Positions 24,901-50,725 of a stretch of 64,000 nucleotides of DNA are shown in pieces. This DNA is from Fimbriosthenelais zetlandica (taxonomy: Eukaryota): the NCBI GenBank assembly GCA_977030845.1, contig OZ365109.1:57350001-57414000 (forward strand). Reading direction: 5' to 3'. Made by a program: the position numbers and the translations under genes. The notes beneath the pieces are model-generated. The model ran no database searches, was not told the DNA's origin, and worked only from the letters and a program-made list of their open reading frames with translations. Each line of letters starts with the position of its first letter. Position 1 is the stretch's first letter.

Positions 24901-26879
24901 ACATGAAACGAACTTAATTGTTGAAACCGAAAATAACATTTCGCAAGAAACACCACTTCAAGCTCAATAATAATCAGGCATTTGATTTAATTCATTGTCA
25001 TTCGATGGGAAGCAAGATTCTCTGAGAAAACCATTAGAGGTTGGTTTTGTTTCCAACTCTTCTCAAACACATTCTCCAGGAAACATACCATTCATCCTGT
25101 TCAGAGTTTCAGAAGTTCCTGAAGTTCTTAGCTAGAAGTGATGAACTTCCATGATCTTTAAAAGCTAGCTGTGGGGCTGTGGTTCGTAGTATCAATAAGA
25201 CTGGACATGTCATACACTACAAGTGTGATTCCCCCCAGTAAGGCAAGGGTCAGAGATGGGTGACCCCAGCCTACTCCCCAGAGTGACCACTAGAAGGTCA
25301 CTCCACTAGCCTCGGCTGACCTGCGGTCATCCTGATTGATGACCTTAGGTGTTGCTCTGATACGGAGTCAGGGCCGCCTCAAAGGAGGGCCATGCTCGGA
25401 CAGGGTCTAATGGGAAGGCGGTCCCTAAAAAGTCCCATCAACCAGACTTAACAACTTGAATGACATTAGATTTAAGGGGAGGAGTGGTGGAGAAAGCATG
25501 AAATAACATTGCTGACTTGCACCTCAATGAAAGGCCTATTCCAGAGCAGAGATCCTGAGAAGTAATACACTTTCTCCCCTGCTCAGTGCTGGGCGGGGGT
25601 GATTCCCGGCTAGAATGGTTCCTTTATGAGAGGAAGTGTCATCTTTCCTCACGCTTTCTGCTGATCCCCGGGGCTAAGGGCCTGGATTTATGGCATTATT
25701 ATATTTTATGGTGCACAATGTAACATGGTCTAAATGAACAAATCAAGCCATGTTATATGTGGTACCTGACTCAATAATCACCCATCATTATCCAGGAAAA
25801 GTTTCATTTTCAACCAATACCAAACTTCGATCTGAGTAAACTTTTTCAATATCCTTCCATCATTTTTATCACTGCATCATGGGACCAAAGTTGTCCGAAA
25901 CTTACAACTCTCAGAAAAGTCTTTCACAGTTTGCACTGTAAATTCCACTCTTGGTTCTGCAAATTCTGAGGAGTTGTTTTCATTATCGAGTGCCCCTCCA
26001 GAAGATGGTTTCTGCGGGTCTTGCTATATAGCAGTGCCAGCATGGTTAGACACGCCATCCGGTTATTACCCTTCTCCTGTATTAAGTGTGCATGTTCACA
26101 CCTTGACGCCAGGCCCCGAGAGATGGAGGAACATACCCCACTAGATGTCATCCTCTTGATTGGACTGCTGACCTCTCTGGCCAGCCTTGTTTGAGCTGCT
26201 CCTAGTCTTACACTTGCTCTCACACATTGCGTGTCAGGAAGTATGGGCCGAGGTCCCAGTACGCTACATGACAGCAGGCCATGGCAGCCTGACGCGTTCT
26301 GTAATAATTTACACACAGGAGAAGTATTTTTTCTGGTATTTGCCTCCAGCATATATCAAATATTCATTAAAACATATTTTCAGGGAGCTATAATACTAAG
26401 CTGAGTCCTTCATATACTTTAATAGTAAAAGCATTAAGAAAACGCTAGAATAAATTGACCAATCAATCGAAGATCTTCATATTAACATTTATACAGCCTA
26501 TTAATACAAGGCAATATACTGGAGGAGACGCAGCAGAAAACTTGTAATATTCTCATTCATAATCAGATTATCCACCATCTTTCTTTTTTGAAAGAGAAGA
26601 CGTAATATGCAGTTGCAACAATTCAACGGACAGTATAATTTCATTGGAAAGATTTTGGTTTCAAATTTGATGTGTTTGCTGAAGTGATTCAACAATTCAG
26701 ACAATAATAATCAGAACTCCAGCTAGACCTTAAAGGGCAGGAGCCATTTTTGTCGCCATTAGGGGCTCCCTATAAGCCAAATGGAAAAGAAAGAAGCCCG
26801 GGGATTATTGGCCACTTTTACTCTGTTAATGATCGTCCCTAGATTTTGACCCCCGTGATTTAACCCTGCACCAGTGGTT

Positions 26880-27705
26880 GTGGCTGACCAGTGGACAGTG
26901 GAGAAATCGGGGTTCGGGTCTGGGCTTAGCTTTACTCGCTGTGGACAGTGGAGGGTGGGGGGGGGGCGGGGGGTGAACTGAGTGAAGATTTCACACGGTG
27001 CATGATTGCTGAGGTACCACCGCTTGTGACTGACCAGTGGGCAGGGGTGAGGAAGGGGTATTTGGAAATGCGTTGTCCTATCTTTTAACCCCATGTGAAG
27101 CTTTCTACCTACTGAAGGGTTGGCTTGTAGCTTCCAACCAAACTACCCCCACCCCCTTCCCCACTCTGCTGTATGTGTGAAAGCTAAGGACCAGAGCTCT
27201 ACGATCAGTAACACATCCCCCCACCCACCCCCAAACTCCAGTCTACTTACCCAGTAACCCTAGTCCGGTGCCTCTTCACACCAACAGTCACCAAACCCGA
27301 CCCCCGCCCCCAATCTCTAAGCAATAGGCGAACGAGAGAGCGTGTCCTGTATGTGTGAAAGCTAAGGCCTGTCATGTACAGTGCCTCGAACCCACCACCA
27401 GCTACTCCCACCCCATCCGACTCTTAGCTTTTACTTGTGGCTTCACGCTTCACTGGTTTTCAGCCCCCCCCCCCCCCCCCCACCCCTGCCTGGTGACTCT
27501 TCCGTGTAGCCCCCACCTCCCCTGCTATAGACACACACACTGACAGCACTGCCGGAGGGGTGTAGTAGTGAGGGTAGCTGAGTGGCGGGTTCGAGGCACA
27601 GTCTGGGTCATAGCTTTTACCTTCACACTCCAGTGGTTTTATGTACTGCTTCAATATCTCAGTACCCCTACCCCGAGAGTCTGTTGCGTGTGTAAAAGCT
27701 GGAGC
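26880..27705. repeat. Modular GC-rich direct/inverted repeat cassette with G- and C-tracts
   Basis: Exact 21-bp direct repeat ctgtatgtgtgaaagctaagg at 27169 and 27347. Inverse tagcttt(t)ac copies near 26927, 27425 and 27611. About 30-bp inverted repeat at 27381-27410 vs 27570-27599. G-runs at 26953-26973 and C18 at 27464-27481. Confidence 0.8.
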
Positions 27706-27720
27706 CCTGGTACTAATTTA

Positions 27721-27894
27721 TACAGTCGACTCTCCTTATTATGGTCACCCAGCGTTCTGAGCAAAACCGACCATTTTTAAGGTCTAACCACTGAGGAATA
27801 GTAGGATAAGATACACCTCCGTTCTGAGAAAAATTGACCATAATCGGGGTGTGACCACTTACGGTCCGTGACCACTAAGGAGGAGTGGATTGAA
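27721..27894. mobile_element. Tc1/mariner-pogo(Tigger)-type MITE, degenerate, about 170 bp
   Basis: Left end TA|CAGTCGACTCTCCTTATTATGGTCAC is a typical pogo/Tigger-like start with a TA target duplication. The right end GTGACCACTAAGGAGGAGTGGATTG (27868-27892) is an imperfect reverse complement. There are internal GACCA subrepeats and no ORF. The right TA is mutated to AA. Confidence 0.6.
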
Positions 27895-30800
27895 TATACA
27901 AGAAAATGAAGCCATACAAATACAACTTTCATGAAGCCATACCAGAAATTTATGGTGCGCATCACTTATTAACAACTTACCAGCGCTTTATGCTTTCGGC
28001 TCGGCTGGGTATAAAAGACAGTCAGATCAGAAGTGGTGTATGTAAGCAGGACTAATAAAAGTTTGATGTATGTGCCTGGGGGAGGGACTATCTGCAGCAC
28101 ACATCACTATTATTAATGCAACATGGGAGGAACATACTGGTAAAGACATCGCCTTCAATGCATGACTAATATCCTGGTTAGCCAATCCCCAAAGCACACA
28201 TCACAAGTTGACAGTTTCATTTAGTAGCGGATGGTATTATCTGTTTCCTTGGTTAGGTCACTATGCTGTATTACACGGGCCAGACCTTATCATGACCGCG
28301 GGGCTCCTGCTCGCGGGGGCTGGCAAGTGTCGTGAGCCCATCTCATGGGAGGGCCTGTCACTGTGACACAATGCCGATAACAGAGATGGGCAGGAGGGCC
28401 AGGCTTTTTGAAATGTAGACTGGTTATTTTGCTTTGGGCATTTATGCTGTTTATAGCCTAGGGCAGAGTATAGATAAGTGGTCATAGGGTTACAGATACA
28501 TACTTTCAATTTCAGTCGAACAGAGTGCAAACCATCCTTTTGAACATAACTTAATAGTCTTGTATCAAAAGAGCTAATAATGTTCAATTAGGCTTCAACA
28601 CACGTTAGTTCCAATTGACTGAAATCAAGTGAAAAGAAAAGGAAGTTCCTCACAGACGACAGAAATACATTTGAACACACTTTGTGGAACAAAACCTGTT
28701 GCATCAAAGTTATGCAATAAGACAAAGGTTGGAAATTAAAAAGTAATAAGAGATAAAATGAGACACAATTCAACTTTGATTCTGACACAAAGCATGTGTC
28801 CTCTTTTGATTTGAACGCCATTGCATTTGAATCCAGCTGCCCATTTATTGATGTCCGATCATGAAAAGCTGTGGACCTTTCAGGGACCTGGGCTTGGATA
28901 AGAGAGCAATGATAAATGAAAGCTCTGAATTCCATTCCTGGCTTATTCTCCTCAGCAAAAGAACAAAGGTGGACGCCACTTTTATCTTCATCAGTCAGAC
29001 AAAACTGGAGAAGCAACATTACTTTTTCTTGTGAAGAAACTTTAAACTGAAACTAAGTTACAAATGGTCTGAAAAATGATGAAGTGCACGACAAGAGCTG
29101 TCGTTTTTGGTGTCATGTATTAGCTTCACAAAACATATCGGAAGCCACATACAACAAAAAAGCTAGTTCTTACAGAAAGCAATTAAGGGCTGCAATGACA
29201 GCTATATGTTTTCAGCATAAGCTCAGCTGCATTTTCTTTTTAAATGCAAGCATATGGTCTTGCATTGAAATGCAATATCAAAGCCAGCAGCCAAGGATAA
29301 GGAAGGCATGCAGACCAGGGACCCAGGATAATTGGCAAATAAAAAGAACAAACTTCATATCATTGTTCATTAAGACACTGACAGCACCGGATATTAACCT
29401 TTTGTTGCTGACGCTAAAGGAGAGCCAGTAACCTGTCGAAACCGACCAATAGAAATCCAGCAGAGAGTCAGCAAAACGACATTGAAAATGACGTCACGAG
29501 AACGAGCCTCTGCTTAAAAATGTCGAATCCAAAGTGGACGTAACAAGGCAATCCAGGAAAGGTGCCGCTTCCAGGGGGAAGCCCAAACTGCGTGGCTGAG
29601 AATATGGCTCATGAATTAGCAATCCTAACAAGCTAGTTGGCTGACAGCCCGAACATGTGCAAAGGAAGCCAATGACAAGCAAGAATGATGGTAAAGACCA
29701 GCAGGAGATGTTTGCCTGCTAGGAACTAAGGTGAACTTCAGAAAACAATTGCAAGGAAAGAGACTTGAGAAGTTACGAAGACACGCAATGAGCAAGATTC
29801 AGGAAGGGGGATAAATCAGACTTACTGAAGGCCAACCACTTCAATTTATCAAAACACGAAGCCATTTGTCAAATGAGCGTTTTTCAGGGGTAAATACAAG
29901 AGAGCAGGGTACTTCAATATTGTGGCATGTTGCTTGCTTGTTCAATCAATGATCTAGGCCAACTCCTTTTCCTGCCGGAAGCCCATCGCCCTTGTTCACA
30001 TAAGGGACAGGGGGTAAAAACCTCAAGGTGTATTTCTTACCAAACCAAATTGGATCTGTCATTCTAGCTGCCCTTCCTGCTGATCCAATGTGGACGAGCA
30101 CCTCGCTTCTAATCTTAACTTCATCATAAAATATAACAGAATCAATAGGAGGGAGCAAAAATCGATGTGGAAGGTAATTAGCTTTTTACACTCGTGATGG
30201 GAACTTCGATCTGGGTCTCTCCGGCTGTTATATGTTCCCCAAATCTCATTGGATGCAGCATAATGACGTCATCGATTCCAGTGGTAATCCCCAAGCAATC
30301 GATGGGTGAAAATTGCTCTGCTGATTGAATTTTGGAACTGTCTGCCACTTTGGGGCTGGGGATGGATTGAATTAGTTCTAAAGGAGGGAGAGTTTACCAC
30401 ACAGGTAGGCCTGGCTCGTTACTCAGGGCAGGGCACATTTTATGCGGTTACCGGAGAGATGCAAATATTGCCTTTCCCGGCTTTTCCACGCTTGGAGAAC
30501 ATGCATAATCTCACAAATAGTGTTAGGCGAGCAATAGCTGCAGGCATGCAATATTTGCAGAGATGGTGATTGGGTTATGGTCAATTAGATAAATCCCTGT
30601 GAAGCTTATAGATCTATGTATGGGATGGAATGACCAGTGCTGAGGCATATAGCTGGGCATATCATATGAAAGCACTGCTCTATATTATTATGATGATGGG
30701 CTGAACTGAGACATGGTAACATAGTTTAGAGACAAGGCTGCAACTTTTTGTAGCTATACATTATCTGACGAATTCACAATACATGTATGTATATAGGCCA

Positions 30801-33800
30801 TAAATCAATGAGAATATTCTAGTTACACATTGGTTGGTGGGGTGTACGGGGACAAAGACTTAATTTGGAAGTAAACCAGTGAAAATCTGCTTGCAATGTG
30901 GGCACAGAAGCCATGTCAGGGCCTTTTTGTCAGAAGGAGCTGGCGATCTCAGTGTTTGCGAAGTGCAACCGCGACTGAAGGCATAATCTGACAAAGCATA
31001 GATATTTTATACAAGATTACATAATCAACAAAATCTTGGCTTTATATTATGGAGATAAATAATAAGGTGAAAATAATAAATAATACTAATGTGAAAAGTT
31101 AACTAGCTATAGCTACGGGAAAGGAACTAAGCAAAGTTTCATAAAGAATACATGTATTCCCACAATTGGCTCAGTGATCATTTGAAAACAGCCACTTTTG
31201 TTGAAAAAAAAACAACTTTATTTTCCATGTATTTTTTCAGCCCTTTTCCGACGCCCACTTGAGCAGAACCCGGCCTCAGGAAGGAACTTCTTCCCCCTCT
31301 TGATTGCCAGGTAATCTATAATCACTTTCTCCACTCAAGGTAAAAAGCCCTACAAGAGGCGCGCGTGGAGGAGCCCCGGGCAAAAATCTCACCACAAAAT
31401 TACACTCTTTAGTTCCCCAAAACAGGCAAATTTCAACAAAGGCCCCACCTTTTGAAATCATGATTTGCCAGAACTGAAAAGATGAACAAGCCTGGGGACA
31501 AAAGCTTTCTGCATTCACTCTGTTAGTGGACTAACAAGTGAAAACATCCCTGATCCCTAAACCAATTTCTATTGTAATTGAAATCGTATAAACAAAATAT
31601 AAGCCTTACATGTAAGTTGAAATTACTGAAAGGAAGGCAATCCGAGATTTGGAGTATCTTTTAAAAGAAACAGCTAGGAGGAAACCGAAGAATCCATGTA
31701 ACATATGACGCAGAGAACAGATCAAATTTTTAATTCTTATTTTGATCCTTCCAAAAGTCCCTGTATATAAAATGCAAAACGTTATGCCCAACATATCAAA
31801 AAGACAGACTTGTTTAATTAAAAATGTTATTGAACAGATCTCATTAGATAGAAAGGGCTTATAAGAAACTTCTCCTTCGTCTTCACATTAGTATTGCCGC
31901 CAGAGACGAGTCAGAGATTCACATGAGGTAAATGGCAGATTTAGTGGCAGGTTTATATAGTGTATGAGAGAGGGGTGGTAATGGTAGTGAATATTTTCCC
32001 TGCACCATGATCAGACGCCTTAGGGGCCCATCACTGACAATCTATATAAGATCAACTCCCCTCCCACTACCCAAGCTCATTTTACAGTCACTCAATCCTA
32101 CGAATACTATATGGCTGCCTAACCCCCAAAACACAACTCTCATACGAATACGCATTCAGAGGTATCATATATATATGTCCTAAAATCAGCTTCGTACACT
32201 GTTACTCAATTTTCAAGAAAGTAGGTTTAATCAAAACAGATTAAATGTAGAATAAATCCTTATATATATATTTAGTGATCACAGATTTGCAGTCAAATAT
32301 GCGATCTATAACTAAACCAATGTATCAGCAGCAAAAAATTATCTGTTCCCTCTTGTTTCTCCCTATTAAAAACAAAAAAAGGTTATCCTGAACAGATGCT
32401 TTTGTATAGGATCTAGATTTAGATGCCAATAGGGCAGCTATTGGGAGAAGGCATCTGAGGGTCACACCATCAAATGTAGCGGTGGCGGGCGGACGAAGCG
32501 TGATGGCATTTTTTCTGTCTGGTGAGGTTTATGGTAATGAGACAGGGGAGGATCTATATAAGGTTTTTAACCCATTGATAGCCATCTGGATATACCTGGC
32601 CTAGTTCCTTCACCTCCTCCTGGCCCCGTGAAAATTTGTGGATACAACATCAGTAATCTTGGTGAAGCCTCTATCAGGGAATTAGTCAATGTTCGTCTAA
32701 ACGAGTATAATACATGGATATAGTTTTAATATTGAAGTACACATTAATATGTTTATTATGCATTTAAGAATTAAATAGTGTATAATTCCTCCATGCTTGT
32801 CCAACCTAGAACATAGCAATAACATGACCAACCTTAGCAAGATAAACACTGACGAGTGTAATAGGAATAAAAATTGTAACGAAAAGGCTAGTTTACACCC
32901 GGAAAGTGACCAGCACCCCTCGAGACTCAGACCTGCTTTGGCAAACAGGCCACGTAAGATCCCAAACTAAATTTACGACACAGGGGGCCACCAGCTCTGT
33001 CAATGTCATTGATTCAGTCATCAAGTTATAGCTAACGCTCGCTTACTTTCTTGGACCAGTGCTACACTCTGAGGATTTCCAGACGTGTCTTACAAGCTAG
33101 ACCAGAGGATGGAGTGACTTTCCTGTCATGCATTGCTTCCATGGGATTTGAATTAACGACCCAATTTGTAGCAATTAATCGAGGTGCACACTGAACAGGC
33201 AATCCCGCTGTGAACCATTTGGTATCATTGAATGATTTTTTCCCCTCGGTAAATGTCCCCAGGAGAGCCACTTGTTAAAAATGACTGGGGAAGTCAACTG
33301 TTAAGAGGTAGTAGAAAGAATTCTGGTTTTTCGTACAACTTTGATGAGCTGAAGTCTCCCCATCCACAACACTCCGATTACGGAACAAAAAGTACATAAA
33401 TATTCAGGTTCCTCTCAGATATAAGTGCTATATATATTGGAATGTCTTGTGCACGGTGTCTTGATACCAGTATGTGTGCCCTGCTCAATAATGTTAAATC
33501 GGAAATGGGAATCAATCAGTGTTACAACTAAATCATCATTTTCACAAGTGACCCAGGAACGCGTTGACCATTCATCAAATGGTCAGAAGTACAAACTGAC
33601 TTTTACAAATCCCTCTCTCAGTATCCTGACCACTTCTGTATATGTACGCCCACTGCACTAATACAAGCCAGTCAATGCCTTCTTTAAGTAACAACTTCAT
33701 GGGCCAATAACCGGACAGATCTCAAATGGACGCCGATCCGAGAAATCCTTTTGTTTGGAAGCCCGGACCAACCGAGTGGAGAAGGCGATGAAGGGAGAAG

Positions 33801-35072
33801 AGGAGAGGAGGTAGAGGGTTGACAGGTCTGAGAGAGGGACTGACGGATGGTTCAGGGGGAACATACCGGGGACGAAATGCTTGAGACAGCCTACTCTACA
33901 ACAGCTGAGAGCAGTCCCCGGGTGAAGAGAGGCCAGGGCGCCTTCATGAATACAGCTTTGACATTCTGGCAGAGGAATGGCAGGAGCAATATCCCTCAGC
34001 TTGACTGAACCACACTATAATGAATACACATCAGCAGATCTATCAGACTCATAAATATATAAGGCTACCAGGGTTAAAAGGCAAATGCTCCTTCTTCGTC
34101 TCTACAAGGGTCTGACCATGGATCTTCTTCAATGTTTTTCCATTGTATCAATACTATTTCCAAACACAGTAAATCTGCACAAAAATGTTATATACAACAT
34201 GGAAATCTATTATTGTTATCAGGTCAATAATCAATATAGATGAATCGTTCATCATTTGATTATCTGATATTGGGGATATAACTTTGGACAAAAGGTCATC
34301 AGGGAAGCACCATGCACCGAGAAGGAAACAATTTCCTTTAGCAAGACCTTATGTCTGGCTTATCAAAGGATATGATGCAGAAAAAAGCAAATTATATATA
34401 TGTTCATATATAAAGACCTCAAGGGAGATGTAAGCAAGTATAGAACTTTCCTTTCCTAAGAGTAAATGCCAGAGGTCATTTAGAATCAGTGTCCTTTGTG
34501 CATTTGGACAGGGCAAAACAGTTCTGAGGTCCAGTCATCAGTATCTGTTTCTAGAGTGGCTAGTAAATGAAGGCAAGAGCTCTCATTACTGCCAGACATT
34601 TGACCGATGTGTCCACTAGAATCAGACAAATTTCCTCTCCCGCATGCCGCTTTGCGTGACGCGGCCAGAAGGGACTTGAGCTCCTATTGCCTTTCTCGGT
34701 ATATAGACAAAGCAGAAGCTCCTAAAGGTATGGATCTGTATTCTTTCACATATGAAGTGGATCTTCATAAAGGAGCTTTAGTTAGATCCATTTCTATAAA
34801 CCCAATAAGTTGTTTTCGAAATTATTTACCAATCCAAATTGAAGTACTTCTTCATTTAAACTGAAATTATAGTATTATATTGTGTTTGTTTTGCAAATTA
34901 TAGTCATGTAAATAGGATATATAAATAAGTGTATACATGTGCCATAAAAATTGTATTTCGCAAGCTCAACAAGCCAAACAGGGTTTTATCTTTCCTATCA
35001 TTGTCATACATTGTAATGTTATTGTATACTTGCGTACTTAATCGTTTAACTCTCCAATAAAAGGATATACTT

Positions 35073-35600
35073 TATGGAGCCTTGACAAAATCAAGATTTT
35101 TATATACTACTTTAATACCTGGTCGAAGAGGGGGGGTGGGCAAGTTCACTTTAATAATATAAGTACATAAAGCCTACAATATATGGCTCTATGGAAAATA
35201 ATGCATCTAAATAAATGCTTAGATGGTCCAATAGGAATATTTGTCAAATTCATTCAATTTTGTTCCATAATATTATTGCCTAGTCCTGGAATTTTTTAGA
35301 GCTTGGATAAGATCAATATTTGATATACTACTTCAACCGTCTGAAGGAGCCAATTCACTATAATACTACTACATAAAGGATTATATAATATACACTCCAT
35401 GGAAAATTACGCATCTAAATCAATGCTCGGTGGCCCACTAAGAAGCTCATTCCACCAAGAAACTTGTTAATTCCCCCTCTACCCATGATATGGAGCCTGG
35501 ATAAAGTCAAGATTTATATATACTACTTCAATGCGTACCTGGGTCAAATAGGCAATTCACTATACTACTTACAGAAATATCTACGACTCTATGGAAAATC
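35073..35600. repeat. Degenerate tandem repeat of about 200 bp, about 2.6 copies
   Basis: Landmarks recur: atatactactt at 35102, 35323 and 35518; atggaaaat at 35191, 35399 and 35591; gcatctaaat at 35203 and 35411. Confidence 0.85.
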
Positions 35601-38600
35601 TTCGGCAAGAATAAAATGAAAACGGTGGGATTTGAATTGATAATGAATAATTATTTTGTGAATGTATGGCAGAAATAAGTTTGCAGATGAATAAAAAGAG
35701 TGCAGTTACATTCAGTTTCAGTGAAATCCCCAAAACGCTCATGTCCCTTTCAAGATTAGATTAAAACTTCATTTTAGAAAGGCACCATGAAGACAGATGA
35801 ATGCACCGTCTCTCATATGAATGAAATACAATGGAACAATACAAATGAAGACAATGTATTGCAGCCAACCATGTAAGAGACAATCAAACCGCAGAAAACG
35901 CTGGTTTATTCATAATCTCGGTAAGGCAAACAATCATCTGAACATCGGGATGAGAGATAATGAAATCAACAGTGGTTGAATGTACCACTGCATGAAGTAT
36001 GCATAGTCATCAGAATCCAACACATGGCCAAAGACCCTCAATTCAGGATTAATGTATTTGAAGGGGGGAATATGATATAGAGAAAGATACTGAATGATAT
36101 GGATAGGCAGGCCTAGTCCATACTTAACTCTGGCCACAATACAAACGCTTCCCGAGGGACCAGTTTCTGTTGTGTCCGAGCCGCTTTCATCCGTCTCCTC
36201 TGACTCCAGTCTCCAATAGCCTACCGCTGGGCTGTAACTATATTATCAGAATGTAATCAAATTACACACACAGTTAAGCTCGCTTCACTTTGGCTGCATG
36301 TGATAAATATTCCCGGCTGAAGCCAGCAGAGGCTCGGATTGAAGGCGGAGAGAGGGCTGGGTGCTTTGTTTTGATTACAGGAATCGGGTCTTGACCAATA
36401 GGTTGGTAATCCAAGAATACCAAAAGAATCAGTCCCTGTGTGATTAAATATACAGGAATGTATTGAGAAGGACGCCTTTATAATGTAGGATAAGCCGTTC
36501 ATGTCGGACATCTGTACAATAGGACACTGTAGCTGTTAAAGCAGTAGTCGAATGCATAAAGCCAAATCAAGGGATTCATTCAGCAACAAACTGCACTACA
36601 TTTCAATAGCACATTTTCTACATTCAAGTCATGATCCTGCACTTCTGATCATTCTCAGTGAACCAGCAATACGCACAGAAAAGATTCTAAAAAGTACAGA
36701 GAATATCTGGGTGAAAGACCAATTGCCTTTCCCCTAACTAGTAAGCCAGTAGTATCAAATGACTTTGTAAGCAATTCACTTCATACTGAATCCAGTGACA
36801 TGTACACTGCTATAGAGAGGTGTATAGAAGTAAAACGAGCTGGGGACTAAGAGGTTAAGCCCGAGGCCAATTCATAGGACTGTTAAAAACTCTAGCTAAA
36901 TCCAGATAGTTCACCTGAGGTAAACATATCTATTATTGATACTACAGACGATTATGACCTTTTAGGAAAGATAAAAGTCAGAATCTCGTATATGAAGGCC
37001 TTATTAATCATCGAACATAACTCAGACCGTCATTTGTATGTCTGGTTATTATCTTGTTAGTTATTCTAATTAGTCAATCATTAATCATTAATTCTCCTTT
37101 GGAATTGAAGTGCCTCTAAGGCACTCAGAATCACTGTCAGTCACTGAGAATTCATTTGCAAAATGATTACCAAATGTCTATAATGTTCTTGGGTGTAATT
37201 TATTTGTAATTTATTTGGGGGGAAAATATAAGATACCAATACGAAAATACAAAAAATACAAACAGATCAGGAATCGCAATATGTATGCCCCTACAGTGTG
37301 TCCCAAGAGGTCTTGGGGAAGTCCATATCCATCTACTTTGTCGGGACTTGCAGTCTCAGCACAAATCTTCATTCAATTTTCCATTAAAAGCGTCTCTTAA
37401 ATTCAGACAAATTCTTTCTTAATGATGATTTCTGCATCTTTTTCCCAGACTAAATGCGGCATTCTGTGGACTGGTGGAAAGATGAGCACAGACACCCAGA
37501 ACCCACCACAATCTGGTTTTTGACAGGTCCACGTGTTACCGAGCACTCTGCAAAAAGATCCCCTCTGATGGACGACCCCCAGCATGCTTTTGTGAAATGA
37601 TACAATGCCCCACGCCCTAAATGCAGGCAATATTAAATTCAGAGGAAGAATTAGGGCCAAGAAGTGGTTGGTATTGGGCGCCCAATTAGGCAGGAGGAGC
37701 ACGCTTGGCAGAGTAATGATGACTGAAGATCAACATAAGTGATTTATATTGCAGGAAAATTAAATATCAATGGTGCATTCAATTACGTAGGAGCATCGCT
37801 AAAAACTGAGCATTAAAATTAACTTGAAAGGGGTCCCTACTTGAAAGCTTTCAGACTAGGAACATAAATGTCCCAAGGAGACATGGATGGACCTGTTTCA
37901 GTTATTTCCCTTTTCTCAAATATTCCTGTGGAAAAATATTTTGAAATTATTTTCAATTTCCTTTAAAAAACAGATTATGAAAAAATGTAAACATTTTATT
38001 ATCCCGAGAATAAAAGTAGTCTTCCTTTGATCTCTGCTTATTATAAAATATTCGGGAGAATAAAATAATGATTGGGTGTTGTTCGGCGAGCAGTCAGCTA
38101 GGTCGGTTTAAGTGGGGAACACTTTATATATTTGATATTTTAGACAGCAATACTGGGCAAAGAATGACAATTGTCAATTTGGAGAATAAGAATGCTAGTA
38201 GACTTTCTACATTGAAGTCGAACACTTTACCTAAGACATAGTCTAACCCGAGTTCTAACGGCTCAATGTGACATGCACTGAATCAGCCTGGATATGAACT
38301 CTAGACGGTCATTAGCTCAAATGAGTGGCATCAGTTAAAACTGTCATGTTAAAGCAATCCCCTGACGTCCACCTGATCTCACCGAGGTAATTGGACAATT
38401 TCTTATGTAATAACCTTAAATGCCTCACTTAGCCCCCGGAAATAAAGGGTTAATCGAATTATGAATATTTGATTCGACCATCAAACTGGGCTGAAAGGAT
38501 CTTAAAAGCTTAAACGAGGGATTGTGTGAAGGGTACTGGGGCCAGACTATTAAGTTTGCATTCCAAGACGCAAATTGCGGTCAGATTTCTGGCTCGAAAC

Positions 38601-38730
38601 AGAAACTAATTTACCTTCTATTCCATAAATATATTCCATTTAAATAATCATACATATTTCTATCAGTTCATTGATCATTTGAGTGAAGTGAATTTACACT
38701 ACCTTAATTCGTACATGATGACATACTGGT

Positions 38731-38780
38731 GCTTACCTGAAAAGCAAACAGAGAGAATTAAAGAACAAGCATTGACTATT
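38731..38780 (-). other. Candidate recursive splice site (zero-length exon, AG|GT) on the DPY19 strand
   Basis: The minus strand reads aatagtcaatgcttgttctttaattctctctgtttgcttttcAG|GTAAGC. 22 of the 26 nt before the AG are pyrimidines, there is a TTAAT branch-like motif, and no other AG lies within about 40 nt upstream. Confidence 0.55.
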
Positions 38781-41700
38781 CATACCAAAACAACCACGCC
38801 TATAACCATAAATAATTACACTGAAGAAAACTTTAATCAGGTACTCTATTTCTGAATGGTGGACTGCCATGGGAAAACATTTAATCACATTTCCAAATTA
38901 CTTTATCAAGAAGGGGAATAAGAGAGGGACATTAGGAGGAGGTGGAGGGAGAGTAAAGGGGATTAGTGTTTGGTGGGTCATGCAATGCTAATTCATTTTG
39001 GTGGTAAAACTTTCCCCACACAACACACAACTACTCCACTTGGTCTGTTTTTTAACGGTTGATCCAATTTGCTTCATCGAATGATGGATCCACCAATAGA
39101 AAAAGTGGCACGTATCCAATCCCAGAAGAATTACAGAAAATAAATATGCTTACTCATCTGAATTTCATACATAGGCCCCGAGTCATGATAAATTCTGAAT
39201 TAATTAATTAGATTCTCATAAGTGTGAACATGGATCTTAGATATTGACAATTGACTATTTATTTAATACGTATCATCTAATGTAAGAATTTTACAATCTA
39301 AATTACATGGCAAAGTAGGTAAACAAAATGAATATTCCTAAGGTCTATCCAATATGAATAGTGATTTGACAAAAATAGTAGTGAGGATATATTTACTTTT
39401 TAAGCAAGCAATTTTCCCCTCTCAGATATCAATTAAAGTGTCACATTTTATCGTGCCCATCGATGCCACCCTACAAATATCAATGCCATACCAAGTACCA
39501 GAGGTGGCCGCTCGATAAATTCCTGCCTAAATACTCGCCAGATATGGAACAGAAGCCAAGATCGATCACACATGACTCGCAGTTGTTGCCAAGGACGCTG
39601 TTGTCTTGGCAACCAGGGGTTGACAAGGAGAAGGCTGGGAGAGGGGTGATTAAGGAGGTGGTGAAGATAATCAGAGTGGCGTGAGGATCGTTTTTCTCAC
39701 ACCTATAGGATTGATGGATCATGTATGGACACATCACAAAGTTTCTTATACTTGTACACACGAGCAAGGACAGACTGCCAGTTCTGTGTCTAGTGGCCAG
39801 CTGGAGATGATGGCATGCAATGTACCCATTTCACCCTCTCATATTCTACATTTACTTTGTCTAGGAGACCAAGGAACCCACAATGCTTAGAACTAATTTT
39901 AGTTGGAAACTAGTTCGCAGGGAAGCATACACAACATTACTTGCCATTGGCACATTAAAATTTCAAATTGCACATAATTCATTAATTGGCCTATGTATAC
40001 ATGGCCCCAAAATCTTGTTGCTGCAACACCCCATTCCCAAGATCTTCACAACAACCGGACTTGCTCTGGGATCTATAGATCTACTCAGATGTACCTCACT
40101 ACAAAAATTATTATTTCTATCTGACAACTATATATAATCAAATCCATATAGCCAGAAGAATCCGAATATATTTATTGTTTATACTATTATAATTCGGCAA
40201 GTTTTTCGGTTTTCACGGTATATACTAAATCGTTATTAAGATTACTCATTTCAACATACATATAGGCCTAATATTATTCTCTGATGAGGCAGGATATAAT
40301 TTCCAGAAAAGCTGTGGAGAAACTTGTGAGGAGTTCACACCTCTATGTATCGATAATAGATCTAGAGTGAGAGTAACAGATCCTATAGAGATAAAGAGAC
40401 GCGGACCTCACACCTTGCATGTTACAAGAGATCCACGTCCCTCATCAGAGTAATTACATACAAAGCACCAGCCAGGGTTTTGTATGACAAGAATAGAGCT
40501 CACAAACATGAATCCAGGATCATATTACCAGCTTTCTTCCAATCAAATCATGAAAGGTGCCAGCATCAAACGGGCGGCCGCGAGATTAGACACCAAACCT
40601 GTCCTCAGTGGGCAGGTCTAAGCACGCACCGCCGGCAGAACAAGTCTTGGTTGGACTCAGAAAAGAGAAAAGAAAAGATGTAGAAAGAAACCTAACCCAG
40701 GACTCTCACATCTCTTTTTGGACATGATTTCTTTGACAAGGCACGGCATGTGGACTTGTCAGGTTGAATATTTTCTTCTGTGTTTTCGCGAGGATTTTAA
40801 AAAATCTTTTCTTTGCCTTTTTATGAATCCCAGGAAAAAAAATGGGATGACACTTTGTTATCTTTGTCAAGCTGGCGACAACAAGCTTGTAACCAGTTGG
40901 TAATAAGCCGTGGGGAATCAATAAGATGACTGCAACAGAAAATGCGAAAATATTCATTTACACAACAGATACCCTTATTTATGTATGCATAAAAAATGGT
41001 AGGCCTATTTGATAAGTGAATATTTGAATTACAGAAATGAGATACAGAAACAATGGAAAATGTATAATCCATAAATAGTTGGAAGTGGAGAATATAATCA
41101 AGAGAAATTATAATTAAGAGTCCACATGAATCAGGGTGGTCTGACAGATTTTCCTTGTCACATCTGGAAAGGATTCTGACCCCACAGTCCCAACAGATTC
41201 ATAGAAGAAAATCCCAACACATTACCACAGATTTATGACACAACTTACTTAAAATCGCCTCAGGAAATTGAACCATTATTTCCATATTTCTTGCTACTTT
41301 GTGTCAATGCAACCTCATTTTGAAGGATGTTTCCCAATTTAATTCTCATCGCTCATGAATATTTGCCACAATGATTTTGCTGCTACTCGAGCGATGCTCG
41401 CAGTTTTCCTTACATTGTGTATTCTCCCCCATCCTGGGCTTTGATTGAGGGGAAAAAGCTGCCTCCAGATCTGGTCTACCCCGGCTCCCTTTGTCTCGCC
41501 TTTTCTCTTTAGCTTCAATATTGAAATTGGTGGAGATGTAAGGGAAGGCTATGATGATTGAAGTTTTGCTTGCCAGGCGAAGCATGTGGGAATATTCAAG
41601 CGACCGATGAATAACGGAAGCTGATTCAATTGTGCAAGGCTTGCACGCACCTAATCACCCCTTCTTCTATGGCAGGGAGACTGGCGTCCTCTTAAAGCTG

Positions 41701-42863
41701 AGGCCATACATGCTTCAGCTGAGCTTCCACTGGCATAGCCTGCCTTAAGGGTCTGATGCAACCATCTTATCCCAACAAGACCACAGGTGGTACGGACACC
41801 AAATGCTGCTATATTGTAAGTTCCATCAATACATTTTTGTTAGATGTATTCTTTCCTGAATTAGGATCGAGATTAATAGGGATAATTTAAGAAATAATTG
41901 GCTGAGTCAGTCACAGGATAAGAAGCTACGCTGGGGCCTTTGCTGTCTTTGACTTAGAAATAGTGACTTTTACCCATAAATGCTTAATACAGAATAAACA
42001 CTCTAAAATAAACATAATCTGTAAAATGTAATATCAGTTTCAAAGAAGTCATTTTTTAAAGAATCAAATGAAGTACATATAAGCAATACTGATATATATA
42101 TTTAATATTTTCTACAGCAGATAAATTACTAAATGGCTTATTTATATAGGTGAAAACCCGTTGTCAATCAGGAGGAGTCCATGACAGAGTCTCTGAAAAG
42201 CAGGATATATACTCCTGCTATTGCAAGCAGTGTTAGAGGGAGTAGACATACATAATGCTCACCTTGGGAATGGAGCCAGAAATAGAAGAGCAAGAAAAAA
42301 AAAGCAGGCTCATATATCAGTCAAGGTGATAGAAGAATTATCTAGAAGAGGAGGAGACAGGATCACTTCACAGTCAATCAATCATAGGACCAGTAAGAAG
42401 GCGCACAATCAAGGACAAGTGACAGAAAGGCAAGGCTCAGAAGACATGATCACCTCTCCCATTCACGTTTCTTCATCTTACAATATCTCAATACCATATA
42501 TGGCAGACGGCAAATGCCAAGGTCAGATATACATTCTAAAGGTAAAAGGTGCAGTTAAATCAGAAGTCAAAGACAGAACTGGTGGTGAATAAAACAGGTT
42601 CGGTAACTTGTAGTCTATCCATGCAGTGAGTAGACTGCAGTGGATCCTGAATAGGGAGATGGGGCTTTAGGTGGGATTTTCCCGATATTTTACTGTTCCT
42701 TCAAAACGAGCATCTATAGTTATGTTGATGGAGTACTTATATGGATGTGATTGTATCTATATAGATGAATGGATGCAGCGTTGGATGAATTAATGGATGA
42801 ATACATGACAAATTGGTTCTGGGAGATCCGACACACAGTGTTCCAACAAAAGTTTGATCGCGC

Positions 42864-42899
42864 ATCATGAATGCAATGGGAATCATGAATGCAATGGGA
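42864..42899. repeat. Perfect 18-bp tandem duplication within a decayed (TGGA)-rich tract
   Basis: atcatgaatgcaatggga x2. Confidence 0.95.
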
Positions 42900-44432
42900 A
42901 TGGATGGAGGTATTACTGAAGGCATTGGTCTTGCTATGCCCATGTCCCAATGCATGGGGTGGTATGTGCGTGGAGGTGGGTTAACTAGAAATATTGATCA
43001 TTTGAGGCATATGACGTGACGGGTATTGCATGTTGGTTGGTGTTAGGTATAGACCAGGAGACTGAAGTAATCCTGTCACCTCACACAACACCCGGTGTGG
43101 GTCACTACCTCCTCAACGGTCTCACCACTAACTCACCCGACCTACATTCACACATAGTCCGGGCCTCTTTACCCATTAGAGTATGACATTCTCTATAGAA
43201 ATCATCTCAGACAGTTCATTATTTTAAAATGTCCTATTCTTACTTTTGTACCTAATAAATAAGTCCAATAACGGGTTATGGTTCTAGACATATTTCAAGT
43301 ATTAATATGGTATAAATTTCAGGTTGGATAATGCAACAATTCAAAACTGGCAATTTGTATAGAGGAATGCAACTGTTAGTTTTCAATAAAAGAATATAAT
43401 TGATATGACAATTTAAGATAAGGTTTCAAATCAGTATCTTCAAGCTATAGATCTTAGACACATATATATGGGTATCTACCACATTGTTTATTATTGAAAA
43501 AACTGTTTGTTATTAAAGTGTATTGAGAAAAATACATGAGCAGTTTCTTTACATGGTGCCATAAATGCGAGTCCATGCCAACACATGCATGCATAACTAG
43601 CGTGTATACTTAAAGATGGGTGTTTCAGGCGCCAGGCCACATAATTATCAATCTGCATGACCAGCTCGAATAAGTGGTTCTATTGATCCAAAATACACTA
43701 ATAAAATTCTCCTCTATCACCGAGCAAACACTCGGTATGCTCAAAATTAATGAGAAAGGAAAGCTGGATTAAGGTTATTAATTGTTTATGAGACATGATA
43801 CATCAATGTATACTATATATGTTGTACACAAACTGCCGTTTGAATCCAATATTTTCACTTTCATGCAGATGGTTCCCTCATACAGGATGTAGCGTTTATA
43901 TCAGTAGGACAGATTTATCTATTCCAAACAAGGGTATATAGTTATTACAGAAGACATAAGCATACAATATATTCATTATAAAATCCTATTAAATGTAGCC
44001 ATTCCTTGTGGTGAACATAATTTTATCAAGAGACAAAGCCAATGGCTATGGTATGCATATATAATTTCTGTGAATGTAATTTTTGCAATTTGAACTCATA
44101 ATCTGAAAGGGTACTTCATAATTGGCAAATTCTTTGATGAAGAATCTTACTATACAAAGAAAGAATGTAAAACATTTAGACTAGAATTGGTCTCCAATTG
44201 CCCTCTCTAGTACAAAGTAGACAAACTGAATCTAAGCTAGAATTTAATGGGACAAGGGGGGCCACATAGTCAGGCATGGAGGGGGAAAACATCGTCTCCT
44301 ACGACGTGGAATTAATTTCCCATTTGTATTTAAACTTTAAAGGTCAGTTGATAGCTCATTTTTAGCCGGGCGGCGCCAGAGATCCAAGATGCCAGGGACC
44401 TATCTCTTTGGATGAAGCTCGCCTACTGGTTT

Positions 44433-44488
44433 CCATGGTGATGTAATTAACCCCTCCTTGGGCTGAGAGGGTGTTTAATTACCCATGG
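44433..44488. repeat. Imperfect inverted repeat (hairpin) with TAATTA in both arms
   Basis: ccatgg-tgat-gtaattaacccctc ... gagggtgtttaattac-ccatgg. Confidence 0.75.
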
Positions 44489-47400
44489 CATTGTTATGGA
44501 TAAGTGGAAGGCTCAGAGGGGGAGACTGGGGCTGACAATGATACAGACAATAGAGTAAGCTGGAGGCTTGCAGGGCCAGAACAAAGATGGGAGATGAGGC
44601 ATTCTGATACATGATATGCTTTAGTATTAAAGACTTGGCTTGGGATTCGAGCAGGGAAACTGTGAAGGCGTTAATGAATCGCCTCCAGCCTTGTCCCCCA
44701 ACGCGCTTAATCTCAGTTGTTCATTTCCATAGCGCCGACAATTGGAATATTCAACACTGGTATCAAAAGAGGACAACGGTGATTGAACAGAGAAAGGGCT
44801 CCCGGGGTACTGTAAATACTATGTTCAGACACTGATGAAAAACTTACTCAAACTGCTCAAATCCATGGCTACATCCTCTTAGGGGAAAGAGGCAAGATGG
44901 GGTCAGGGTGAACAAGTGGTTTATAAAATAACACTGCTGATGAATCAGATTAAGTCCCTATTAAAACTTTGAATGATGTCTGCATTGTTTAATTAATTTC
45001 AAGTCAATTCACATGAGGGAGTTATTTCCATTTGAGCTGATTATCCATCCTCCTTTTTGAATGGAAGTGGCAAGCTTATTGATGGTGGATTCCTTCTTTA
45101 TATGTGGTCTCCTCGGGGGATGAGCTCTTAAAGGCAATACAGTTCTCTACCTCCATGGTACAATGCGCCACCCCCAATGCCTAGTCAGGAATACTGGCTG
45201 TAGATTTGCTTCCTGTCATTTTTTGTCATCTTCTTCGTCTAAGTACATCAAGATTTATCAGGCAGGCATGCGATCTATCTCACCAGCAATGTCATGATAG
45301 CAAACTGGCTGGAATGGCTTATTACGGCAGGGGCACATAGAGCCGACCAAACAACGGAATCATTTCCATCAGTTGTTTTCCGAGATATACGCTATCACTA
45401 TCACCTACACTACACTTTTGAAGGAATCAATTTTGCTGGGGGAGAACGCAAATAAAAGAACAACCTTCGCTGTCCAAATCTACTAACTTGGATTTTTTCT
45501 AACACAGTGAGTTTTTTTTAATTGTTATGTTTCAGGAAGATATAAACATAGTTTTGGTGATATTAATGTTTCTAGCTTTTCTAGGGCTAATTTTGAAAAT
45601 CAGGTGATTAGATCCAAGATTGAGGTTTATGGATATATTTCTATAGATTTATAGACATTTTATGAGAATATTCTCACAATTTCTGCAGAAATAACCACTC
45701 ATTTGATCTCTCCTTTAATCAGCTCTGTGTGCCTCTTCCTTCCAGCACACAGTTCCTGCTACACAAAGCCATCTATCAGCATATCAATTGTGCATGCCTT
45801 GTAATGCAGCAAGAGCCATGTCCCTTACACAATTGCTTGTCTAATCATCAGTTGTATGTCCCAATTTGCTTCCTTCTGATGACAGCCTCCGAGCTGTTGT
45901 TCATTAGACTCATTCACTCAAGTAATCTCCCGCGACAGCGTCCCTCTCCTGATGAATGCTCCTGGAGGCAACTCTCGTTTTCTAACGTATCTCACGAGAT
46001 TAGGACGTCGCAACGGTTCTGACCTAATTAAGCTTTGTCACGTACCGTAAACGACCCCCTGCTCACAAGCAGACTAATCAAGTGATATTTTTTTTTACAG
46101 TGAAGAAGAGTGTTTTTGGTATTGGGAATCAAAATATTGAAGGGCAATCCATCATTGTCAGGGTGGTTGGTTAGGCCGGATAAGTGGCTGATTGGATCTG
46201 TCCAAGCATGGAGTTTTATATACATAAGAACTCTCTCTTTCTCCATGTTGTTTCCTCCATGGTACAAACATCTGCCAACAACCAACTGCACCCATTGCTA
46301 TTCCTACAGGAGATGGTTGGCATACTCAGACTGGAAATGCCAGGGTCAAGTCAGCCTCCAGTCTATCAGACTCCTAACGCAACAGACCGTTTAAAAACGT
46401 GTCTTTCTCTCAACCATGCTGTTCACTTCGTCATCAAGGCGAAAACATTTTTTGTGGGGACCTCTTCGAAATTTAAAGTCAGCTGACAATTATCATTCAG
46501 GCTCTATCAGGATCAAGTAGAATAAAAAGATCCAAAGGGAAAAAGTATCTAGAAGATCCTGCATGGGAGCACGAATAAGAGGGAACATGTATGTTAGAAA
46601 CTGCTGGAAAACATCTGCCTGGAATATGAATGAGAATTGCCTCTTGCATTGTGTCCAGAGATTACTGGGCAATATTCCCCGGGTGCATACCATGTACCAC
46701 TACGATAACGTATCAGTGCTATGTCTGTGCATGAGGCAGACAGTTCAATGTACGCAAGGCACAGTTGGCGAACCCCCTTTTCTTCCACCACATTTTAAGG
46801 ATAATGAGGAATTTCTTTTACTTATTGATATTAGCCAGTATATGTGCAAATGCATGAACTTTTATCACATGACATTACATTGAGGTCACTCACCTCAGTA
46901 AAACATAACACTTGATAACACCTGAGACGAAGGAATTGCTCCTTGCAGTTTAAAGGCTCTCACACACTGTTAAAATCTGATTCTCTATACCCGGCTTCAT
47001 CCGATATAGCTGTCCGACGCTATACATCTTTTCACACCCAATGCTTTTCATTTTAACAGTCCATTAAATCGAACAAGAGGACTACAGTACATCAATTCGA
47101 CCTGGCCCATAACATGTTGGGTCCAGACACTTGCACCGTGCTCAATCTTATGCACATTGCTATTGGGTTAAGGCTCCTTGCAGACTGTACTAAATACTGT
47201 GCAGAATGGGCCCAGTCCTGCAAACCGTGTAAACTTTTTGCACATTGGATCCGCTTTATTGCATATTGGCTCTTAGCGATCTCAAGAGACTGTCTGTTTG
47301 TTGCAAAAGGTAAAAATCCCTATATTATAATTGCTATGCACAGAAGTCACGAAAATATCTAGTTAATATCAACTTTATAAACATGATTTCGCAGTTGGCC

Positions 47401-50400
47401 ATGCGATACTTGGATTACTATATCTTTATTTAAATATTAATAACCTTCAAAGACAGCAAATCAAGGGGAATCTCACTCAATAGGCTCATTAAGTGGAAGT
47501 TTACCATTAATGAAATTTACAAATGATGAGCATTTTACGTGAACCATACATGTATGCGAAAAATGTCAAAAATTAAGCTTGGAATAAGATGAAATATTGT
47601 ATCATGTCTGGGTAAGAAACAATTATTAAATCAAATATAGATTCCTCTTGTGAGTATAAAGAGCCACTAAATATATATGAATACACGTGGCAACGTGGTA
47701 TCAGACCTCAAACAATACCTCATTCCCTATTCATTGTATCTATTATTCAAACAGTCCCAATTCCACTTGGTGCCAGGATATGTAAATGCAGCGCCATATT
47801 GGTCATGCAATCTGCTAGATACTTCCCTCCGAATTCAATTACTCTCACCGGCCTAGCCCCAAATCCTTAAGCAAATCCCCTCTCACCAACATAGTCTCTG
47901 ATATTAAAGCTGCCCAAGTGTATTTGCAAATATTGTTTATGCAAATAGAAACAAGATTTTAGTGGATTAAAAATAAAAGGGTGCTTTATACAGCCATGAG
48001 TTATGCTTTTCCATGTCGGAGATTGATCTAGGTCTCTTCCACTATGTATATCTGTCTTTATCTTTCAAGAATTCATCCCATAATAATCGAGAGAATGTAT
48101 GTACCGCGGGGACCGAAGCATGGAGTTCTACAGCCAAGCCAAGAACATTAATAGGTGTTAGGCCATTTAATTAAAGGCATTTATCACTGCTAGGTACAGG
48201 GTTAACCTGAGGATTGAAGCTAATGCAAGTTATTCACTCCTCACTGCATCTCACTGTATTAAAAGGATAGACTACATGGAGGTGAGCATTAAAAAGTGCC
48301 ATCTCACTACAGCACAAATTATGCTCCAGTCACATCAATCGAGGTTCCATCTCATCGAGCTATGCTTCCTCGTTCATCGACAGAATGGTGACGAGGCGAT
48401 CTTTCTTATTTTTAAGCTGGTGGTTTCATGGCAGGATCTATAGTCTGTGCCACCGTCTGATCAGTGCGGGCTCAATCTGGATAGCCTGAATTATGTCAGC
48501 AAGGATGCACGTTGACACAGAGTATAGAACTCGGCCACTTTGGGATTGAAGGAAAGAAGAGCCCACAGTTGGCAAAGGCAAGAGTAACAGCAATGCTCTG
48601 GAGCCTTGGTATTATTGCTATTACCAGCCACTCCTCACATCCAGTATAGAGAATTACTGATAATTGTGTCTGCTGGCTGGTAGAAAAGCTTGTTAAATCA
48701 TAGAAAAAGCAATCAATCAGAGAAATAGTTGAGTGGTGGAGGGAAATGGAGCCTATGAGGAAAGATGGTGTTGAGAGGTAGGAGGCTCTCAACGTGACAA
48801 TCCAGCTAAGCTGGGACTCGGGTGTTAAGTCATGAAAGTGCAATCACTAATGAGTGACTGTAAAAAGTACACTTTAACGAAGGCATTCAAGGATAATTAA
48901 TCCTTAAGTGTCATGGATTAACTTTGAAATGTGGTTCAGAATGAAACATTGCTTGTTATTATTATTCAGTATTGGAACCAATCTAATATCGCTGCAACAG
49001 ACCTTGGCTGCTGTCGATATCAAACCAAATATTTTATGTTCTTTGCATCAGAATTTAGTTCACATACTTAGTAATAACATTTGTTCAGGAATAATTATAT
49101 TGCATGGTGTTGCATATGGTGTTGACCCACATTTAGGTTACGTTCAGTAACATTAAACCAGTTAGTTCTTAACAAGTGAAAATTAACTTCTATTGAGGAG
49201 CTGAAAACATTGTTCTGGCATCAATAACTGACAACTGACTGTAACAGGCACCTGGCAAAAAAATAGATGGGAAAAATAACAGGGGCAGGAGGAAGATTAA
49301 AAGTCGCTGGGACAGGAGACCGGAGCATTTGGAAAAAGGAGCAGGAGTGTGGAAAAGGTGGAAATATGAGCAATGGAGTACGAGACGCAATAGGAACACC
49401 AGATTATAAGTAGGTGCAGCAACTGCATACAAAACTATACAATTATGCATTTTGCCCACGGGATAATACAGAAAACGATAAATAACAAGTACATGATGAA
49501 AATATAAACGGGCTATGCATTAGCCTTTATGAGGACGGCAGAAAGTGCCTAAAGTATTCCCACCATCCACTGCCACCCAAGCCCACATAAAAATCCATCA
49601 AGGGAAATAACCTCCCAGCCCATAGAGCAGTTAGCATGAGTTAGTAATGACTTTCCTACTACTATTCAAATTGCTCCTGGTTTCAGAGGGGCCTTTTACA
49701 TTGCTTAGCCTGAGGTTGCTATTAGGGAAGGCTGTTAGGGGCTGAGAGGGAAAAACTGGCAATGTTTGGCATAGGACAGGGGGACAACTCGGGAGGTGAT
49801 AGGTTTATCAGTACTGGGGTATAAACGGCCTATAGCCAAGTATTGGGATTCATTGCTTTGCCTGGCGGAGTCACACATGTTGAGAGATAGTGGGTGAAAT
49901 GCAGCCGTGAATGAACATGATGAGGGGTGAAGCTTTTCAGGCTGTGATAAGGGGAGGAGGATGGAATTGAGTGGGCAGGAGTGGAAATCAAGAGGAACAT
50001 ATACTGACTGCTCAAGTCTCAAAGGCTGAATGGCAATAGGTGTTAAGCTTTCTCCAGTATATATGGGTTCAACAGAGATTAAAGGTCAACATCCAATACT
50101 ATAATTGCGAGTCAAATTTCAAAAGTACAAATTGCAGCATTTAATGTATAGGAAATGAATAGAAAGTAATAATAATATGTAGACAGTGTTTGTTTTTTTT
50201 TGAAGTTGAAAAATAAAAAACAAAATGTAAAAATTAATTTGAAAAACATTTTTTCAATTATAATGGCCCTAGGCGACCATGTCCCATTGCATGATGTTTG
50301 CTTTGTCAATTTACAAGGTAAAAAAAACCCTTACTGAAACATCATCAAAGGAATTAGTCATAAAAACGTGGCTGATTCTCCCACTGTTGTTATTCAATTT

Positions 50401-50574
50401 GAAGCCAATTCTCCAAGGGTCTTGCATCCATCAATGAATATCCGAGTCTCCAGATAGGAAGACCCCAAGAAACAATGCTTTTTTGCAGGAACCACTCCAT
50501 GTGGACAACATTCTGCGTAACAAGGGACTACATGAGAGATTTGGCTGAAGCTAGCAATGGCTCAAATGCTACCA

Positions 50575-50725
50575 TTAGTCGATAAGCTACGTTTACTCAT
50601 TGGCGGATAAGGTACAAATGGATGATAAGCTACGTAGTCATTGGCGGATAAGTTATTAACGGCCGATAAGCTATGTACCATAGTCCATTAACTGGTTAAG
50701 CTACCAATGAGTGAAAAGCTATCAT
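50575..50725. repeat. Degenerate minisatellite of GATAAG(CTA) modules, dimeric period 41-48 bp
   Basis: GATAAG at 50581, 50606, 50624, 50647 and 50665, GTTAAG at 50695 and GAAAAG at 50713. Spacings are 25/18/23/18/30/18. Confidence 0.85.

Follow-up and report, generated by a model that had tools for sequence, protein, structure and literature searches.

A predicted zero-nucleotide recursive splice site near the middle of a 48-kb intron in a DPY19-like gene of Fimbriosthenelais zetlandica

Introduction

RNA data from the fruit fly, mouse and human demonstrate recursive splicing (10.1101/2024.12.11.627982). In Drosophila, zero-nucleotide ratchet points are known from Ubx, kuz, Bx and luna (Duff et al., 10.1101/006163; Joseph et al., PMC8605326), and 196 of 197 fly ratchet points contain TT at positions -5/-6 (10.1101/006163). 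The intron segments in flies measure 18.0 +/- 9.0 kb, with a range of 2.6-63.6 kb (10.1101/006163). The donor of the fly ratchet point is stronger than the donor of the cryptic exon, and the cryptic exons are short and tend to break the reading frame (PMC8605326). For the recursive splicing exons (RS-exons) of vertebrates, the account of Sibley et al. 2015 that is contained in PMC8605326 describes exon definition followed by a competition between the reconstituted donor and the donor of the RS-exon, and an inclusion of the RS-exon that would truncate the reading frame. The site described here would resemble the vertebrate RS-exons in both of these respects. However, according to the same account, the vertebrate examples comprise few intronic sites, found for the most part in neuronal genes and in introns of much greater length, while the intron considered here measures 48 kb.

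The stretch of DNA analysed, here called the window, covers 64,000 nucleotides of the F. zetlandica genome (C1:57350001-57414000) and carries a DPY19-like gene on its minus strand. It is a DPY19L1-like C-mannosyltransferase gene, and the site is placed in its second intron. We propose that this site is probably a zero-nucleotide recursive splice site, or ratchet point, within the 48.3-kb intron. A near-consensus ratchet point had been suggested here in an initial annotation of the window, and its anatomy matches both the ratchet points of flies and a class of similar sites in the F. zetlandica genome. In the following, positions are those of the window, positions past its end are given as window-equivalents, and a slash marks a splice junction.

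The DPY19-like gene and its second intron

The gene model was built from homology and not from transcripts. The third coding exon of the model is located at 15669..15756 on the minus strand, where a 29-residue stretch was read. The next exon lies 23 kb downstream, beyond the window, and the remaining exons are packed within about 12.5 kb. The exon at 15756 requires two bases from the preceding exon, in which the last part of the first transmembrane helix must be encoded. Donors in the required phase were sought across 138 kb upstream, and one candidate agreed with the homologues. This is a microexon of 25 nt on the minus strand at window-equivalent 64062-64038 (C1:57414038-57414062; L014:38-62), which is flanked by ttgatatttcag on its upstream side and by gtatgt on its downstream side. 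The encoded residues, AVLAGLLH, correspond to ALLAGFLH in the homologue P0091 and form the end of the first transmembrane helix. Exon 1 is found on the same strand at window-equivalent 64655-64466 (C1:57414466-57414655; L014:466-655) and encodes a basic N-terminus that starts with MAAKRRHQ, after which comes AYVALTAAL. It is separated from the microexon by intron 1, which measures 403 nt.

The product obtained by joining exon 1, the microexon and exon 3 has an open frame. The joined model aligns with P0091 (ALLAGFLHWNHIS) without gaps and with 76% identity over 38 residues, spanning both junctions, and it aligns end to end with P0028 and P0138. Among the full-length representatives found, none exceeds 47% overall identity to the DPY19 protein. 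Another candidate for exon 1, at 59678 (MQLVLMAFSLLLLTFALLIAVFA), contains a good helix but has a poor donor and no match to a homologue, and the donor at 64038 was preferred.

In this model, intron 2 measures 48,281 nt, from the microexon donor at 64038 to the acceptor at 15756, and the site lies near its middle on the sense strand. The initial annotation had noted that a first exon located between 15757 and 38700 would put the site outside the transcript. Instead, exon 1 and the microexon are placed at window-equivalent 64655-64038. Since the upstream exons thus lie beyond the window end, the site would be situated inside intron 2 and divide it into two segments on the minus strand. The first covers 38737..64000 plus 37 nt past the window, up to the donor at window-equivalent 64037, with a total of 25,301 nt, and the second covers 15757..38736, which is 22,980 nt.

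The ratio of observed to expected CpG is 0.36-0.5 from the DPY19 gene body to about 66 kb, and 0.6-0.7 at 64-72 kb. This profile agrees with a DPY19 promoter located just past the window end. Over the neighbouring Delta/Serrate-like gene at 73-100 kb, the ratio is 0.26-0.38, and the depletion of CpG is mosaic across C1:57.32-57.50 Mb. Mosaic CpG depletion is typical of invertebrate gene-body methylation.

The Delta/Serrate-like gene is the upstream neighbour of the DPY19-like gene (L014-L017, window-equivalent 73-100 kb, minus strand) and contains DSL and EGF exons. It includes four tandem units placed about 2.85 kb apart, each of which has an MNNL-like exon (MFYVKFTSFENTNG..CCDD..), and the donors of these exons are at window-equivalent 81575, 84423, 87282 and 90130. 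Separately, an element of about 50 nt is present in two adjacent copies (..gagccgtgccacccacaatgtt..ggcacgccagtacccaa) at 15870-15995 on the minus strand, just upstream of the acceptor of the DPY19 exon.

Anatomy of the predicted ratchet point

On the minus strand, the sequence around the site reads ...gcttgttctttaattctctctgtttgcttttcag/GTAAGCACCAGTATGTCATCATGTACGAATTAAG/GTAGTG..., with the junction TTTTCAG/GTAAGC, and the sequence that starts at 38736 is GTAAGCACC. The predicted ratchet point is located at 38736..38737, where the AG ends at 38737 and the GT begins directly after it, at 38736. Upstream of the junction there is a pyrimidine tract at 38739..38764, in which 22 of the 26 positions are pyrimidines. 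At positions -21..-3 the count is 17 of 19, with a T at -4 to -7, and the tract is broken by two G. The branch-point-like motif TTAAT is placed at 38757..38761, which is 21-25 nt upstream of the AG (positions -25..-21), and the closest upstream AG is 39 nt away from that of the ratchet point.

The donor of the ratchet point, GTAAGC, occupies 38731..38736 and scores 7.8 bits. Further downstream, the weak donor AAG/GTAGTG (38697..38702; 0.54 bits) has its GT at 38702, corresponding to +34, and would close a predicted cryptic RS-exon of 34 nt at 38703..38736. An alternative downstream donor, AAG/GTAAAT (38609..38614; 3.4 bits), is located at +122. All of these features are on the minus strand. 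If either the 34-nt or the 122-nt piece were kept, the reading frame would run into AGG-TAA, a stop in the second codon past the junction.

Each of the motif elements listed in the initial annotation (22 of 26 pyrimidines, TTAAT, TTTCAG/GTAAGC, and AAG/GTAGTG giving 34 nt) was recovered on the minus strand, and the distance of 23.0 kb that it gave to the acceptor of the DPY19 exon was measured as 22,980 nt, with 15756 as the first base of the exon. The region 38400-39100 is single copy and matches only itself across the 447-Mb genome; an origin of the site from a repeat family was rejected for this reason.

The site has several features in common with the ratchet points of Drosophila. As in flies, a strong 3' splice site abuts a strong 5' splice site (YAG/GTRAGY) on the sense strand of a long intron and away from the exons, here 25.3 and 23.0 kb from the intron ends. 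A prominent pyrimidine tract with TT at -5/-6 is present, and the segments of 25 and 23 kb fall inside the fly range of 2.6-63.6 kb. The predicted cryptic exon is also short, its retention would introduce a frame break or stop, and the donors that would close it are weaker (0.54 and 3.4 bits) than the donor of the ratchet point (7.8 bits). Finally, a donor would be recreated after the first splicing step. The microexon ends with ...CACAG (TTACACAG), and joining it to 38736 produces TTACACAG/GTAAGC, in which a good donor, CAG/GTAAGC, can be reconstructed from the sequence.

There are also differences. The host is not a fly, the donor is GTAAGC in the DPY19 site but GTAAGT in flies, and the cryptic exon measures 34 nt compared to about 50 nt in flies. 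Furthermore, conservation and RNA intermediates have been shown for the fly sites, while the DPY19 site is predicted from its sequence.

Splice-site scores and chance expectation

We scored every AG/GT junction with a generic weight matrix that covers positions -20..+1 of the acceptor and -3..+6 of the donor. The frequencies in the matrix follow standard metazoan tables and are not trained on F. zetlandica, and the scores are approximate. The DPY19 site obtained 17.4 bits, of which the acceptor contributed 9.6 and the donor 7.8. The second-best AG/GT junction scored 10.8 bits in the window (392 junctions, both strands) and 12.8 bits in 184 kb of contiguous surroundings (1,278 junctions, both strands). 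The site had been described as the strongest AG/GT junction on either strand, and it does rank at the top of the 392 junctions in the window as well as of the 1,278 junctions in the 184 kb. The DPY19 gene's own splice sites are weaker, with -0.9 and 1.4 bits for the acceptors (n=2) and 4.8-5.8 bits for the donors (n=3).

For the null expectation we used the 184 kb of genomic sequence together with Markov simulations. Acceptors as good as that of the site were found at 37 of 21,377 AG dinucleotides (184 kb, both strands), and the donor hexamers that are as good as the GTAAGC type are six in number, with a combined frequency of 0.0011. The semi-empirical expectation is 0.041 coincidences per 368 kb of strand, and 0.0054 on the sense strand of the intron. 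In the Markov simulations (order 1, 3 and 5), a score of 17.4 bits was attained in 1.3-1.8% of 64-kb windows, on either strand, and the simulations and the semi-empirical count agree.

One explanation for the site is a chance juxtaposition, in which a pyrimidine tract and an AG happen to be placed before GTAAGC and the junction is either unused or a source of rare splicing noise. Several counts are in line with this explanation. The 14-nt core motif has one match in the window versus 0.22 expected, which is not significant alone, and its 576 matches genome-wide compare with 600 for the reversed control, so that there is no enrichment. A pattern tailored to the tract of the DPY19 site produced just 18 matches genome-wide versus 10 for the control. 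In addition, the downstream donor has a low score, and an equally good one is found at +30..+65 of 15% of random positions. Since the short core is not enriched, the signal would reside in the extended pyrimidine tract and its context and not in the core. When the semi-empirical rate is scaled to the 894 Mb of strand in the genome, chance would produce about 100 sites of equal strength, and it is therefore the context that decides the question.

A second pattern, Y8-N-CAGGTAAGT, had 168 matches versus 25. However, about 60% of the matches listed belong to one repeat family (CTTTCCTCACAGGTAAGT), and what remains after its removal could be ordinary splice sites, as estimated by hand. The excess for Y8-N-CAGGTAAGT was set aside as support. 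The repeat family, with about 100 copies (for example at C1:1147891 and C11:1546352-1991523), carries the ratchet-like sequence CTTTCCTCACAGGTAAGT and inflates naive motif counts. It is probably a transposon.

Similar sites elsewhere in the genome

The pattern 12Y+AGGTAAGY has 67 matches genome-wide versus 29 for the reversed control. This pattern excludes the DPY19 site, and the test is therefore independent of it. For the reality of a class of such sites, the placement of the matches is more telling than their count. Among the 67 matches there are nine pairs of same-strand neighbours that are 14.8-29.4 kb apart, while about 0.17 would be expected for random sites, and there are no pairs of opposite-strand neighbours. 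The same-strand groupings consist of four sites in a row on C10, groups of two and three on C21, three on C29 and two on C1.

The four sites on C10 (C10:24137700-24209078, minus strand; L023-L026) are 18.6-27.2 kb apart, with a GTRAG donor at +44 to +49 in every case. They are similar only over 23-43 nt at the junction, and no alignment was obtained between their 3-kb flanks. Since the flanks are unrelated, the chain is not a duplication, and we predict from its sequence that it is a recursive-splicing chain within a giant intron. Fly-like chains of sites, with a spacing of 15-29 kb, distinguish the F. zetlandica genome from the vertebrate RS-exons. The sites on C29 (C29:13733148, 13758006 and 13774033) have near-identical 27-mers, which recur at C15:1334417 and C35:317197, and these could represent a duplication or uncollapsed haplotigs instead of independent sites.

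The surroundings of the junctions were compared for 31 sampled class sites and random positions. A donor of at least 0 bits at +30..+65 is present at 87% of the sampled class sites versus 19% of random positions. For GTRAG at +40..+60 the corresponding values are 35% and 2.6%, and for yTrAy at -40..-18 they are 55% and 22%. There is good evidence, as judged from these sequence patterns, that a class of sites with a ratchet point and a cryptic RS-exon, an arrangement known from flies (PMC8605326), is real in the F. zetlandica genome.

The DPY19 site fits this class, with a pyrimidine tract and a downstream donor that are weaker than in most members. It has the same common core, a branch-like TAAT, a downstream donor and a similar segment spacing. 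Its score of 17.4 bits compares with a class median of 18.3 bits (range 10.8-21.2), the donor GTAAGC is found at 10 of the 31 sampled class sites, and the segments of 25.3 and 23.0 kb are within the class spacing of 15-29 kb. The site differs from most members in having two purines in its tract and in the weaker and closer downstream donor. The cryptic donor at +34 is closer than the usual 43-56 nt in the class, and eight class sites have theirs at 22-38 nt. A GTRAG is absent within 130 nt downstream of the DPY19 site and present at 20 of the 31 sampled class sites. With 0.54 bits, AAG/GTAGTG ranks low among the downstream donors of the class, and the same 9-mer closes the cryptic exon of the class site L050 at +45. 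Donors of 0-2 bits at +30..+65 occur in the class at about 2.7 times the frequency seen at random positions, and the weak donor of the DPY19 site is therefore mild support and not a defect. Another difference is that the DPY19 site is alone in its intron, whereas the C10 sites form a chain.

The context of the site argues against a chance juxtaposition. Only 0.0054 such coincidences are expected on the sense strand of the DPY19 intron; the site is on this strand and near the midpoint of the intron, with segments that match the 15-29 kb spacing of the same-strand chains; and it has a branch-like motif and a donor at the typical distance. We consider it unlikely that the junction arose by chance.

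Searches in relatives and literature

For the ORFs over the site, in sense and antisense, the protein collection contained no homologue. P0001, the nearest protein fragment, is encoded on a contig of 503 bp. The ORF of the orthologous exon matched nine fragments, of which the only long contig measures 97 kb. In all nine fragments, the intron-derived tails diverge from F. zetlandica right after the donor, and since they differ immediately, there is no close relative among them. Five contigs (L054-L058) contain compact DPY19 genes, the introns of which are not comparable, and they have no AG/GT junction above 10.3 bits. The initial annotation knew of no report of recursive splicing in a DPY19 gene, and a literature search on this subject likewise found nothing relevant.

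A model for stepwise removal of the intron

The arrangement of the signals suggests how the intron would be removed in steps, although the use of the site and the order of the steps are inferred. During transcription, once the polymerase reaches the intron midpoint and moves past it, a short cryptic exon would be defined by the strong acceptor (TTAAT, pyrimidine tract and CAG) together with the weak donor at +34. The 25-nt microexon would then be spliced to 38736, which would remove the first 25.3 kb and recreate the donor CAG/GTAAGC. The recreated donor, being much stronger than that of the cryptic exon, would be used to remove the cryptic exon along with the remaining 23.0 kb, and nothing from the ratchet site would reach the mRNA. 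Because retention of the cryptic exon gives an immediate stop, the skipping must be efficient, which fits the gap between the donor of the ratchet point (7.8 bits) and the downstream donors (0.5 and 3.4 bits).

A reading that differs little from recursive splicing is that the 34-nt or 122-nt piece is a regulated poison cassette exon, which is sometimes included and then leads to nonsense-mediated decay and less DPY19, in which case the GTAAGC would be incidental. Either piece would give AGG-TAA, the acceptor is very strong (9.6 bits), and expressed RS-exons and poison exons are known (PMC8605326). However, the donor of the ratchet point, with 7.8 bits, far outcompetes the donors of 0.5 and 3.4 bits downstream, and in flies such a balance between donors results in a cryptic exon that is fully skipped (PMC8605326). 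This makes a regulated poison exon improbable.

It is highly improbable that GTAAGC instead serves as the donor of an alternative first coding exon, the pyrimidine-rich end of which would encode a substitute first transmembrane helix. In favour of such an exon, a 44-codon ORF from an ATG (MAVHH...CLFFNSLCLLF, 38870-38739, minus strand) extends exactly to 38737 and shares the frame of the DPY19 exon, and its product can be aligned, with gaps, to the TM1 region of P0091. However, the N-terminus at 64655-64038 is much better, with a clean transmembrane helix and a sequence that is 76% identical to P0091 across the junction, and the hydrophobicity of the candidate helix is poor (Kyte-Doolittle mean 1.2). 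Moreover, the protein collection contained no homologue of the ORF, a CpG-rich promoter-like region was not found nearby, and the stop-free tract makes an open frame cheap (probability about 0.05, estimated by hand). Pyrimidine tracts cannot contain stop codons, and the 44-codon ORF is most likely a by-product of such a stop-free tract.

Implications for long-intron splicing

Recursive splicing thus remains our preferred reading of the site. It predicts that a mutation of the GTAAGC would trap the stop-carrying cryptic exon in the DPY19 mRNA; a switch to inclusion of this kind is known from the kuz and Bx sites in flies. The mechanism itself is already known, and the DPY19 site would probably add an instance to it.

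With regard to the genome as a whole, the balance tips slightly towards fly-style recursive splicing, with cryptic exons of about 45-55 nt and steps of 15-30 kb, being a systematic way of removing long introns in a non-arthropod invertebrate lineage, of which DPY19 would be one instance. If the site and its companions in the genome are used, an unrelated invertebrate would cut its long introns in steps of about 15-30 kb by means of the fly signal. If such splicing is systematic in a non-arthropod lineage, the mechanism would be much older or more widespread than the cases from fly, mouse and human. If true, this would bear on whether it represents an ancestral bilaterian mechanism or has evolved repeatedly wherever introns lengthen.
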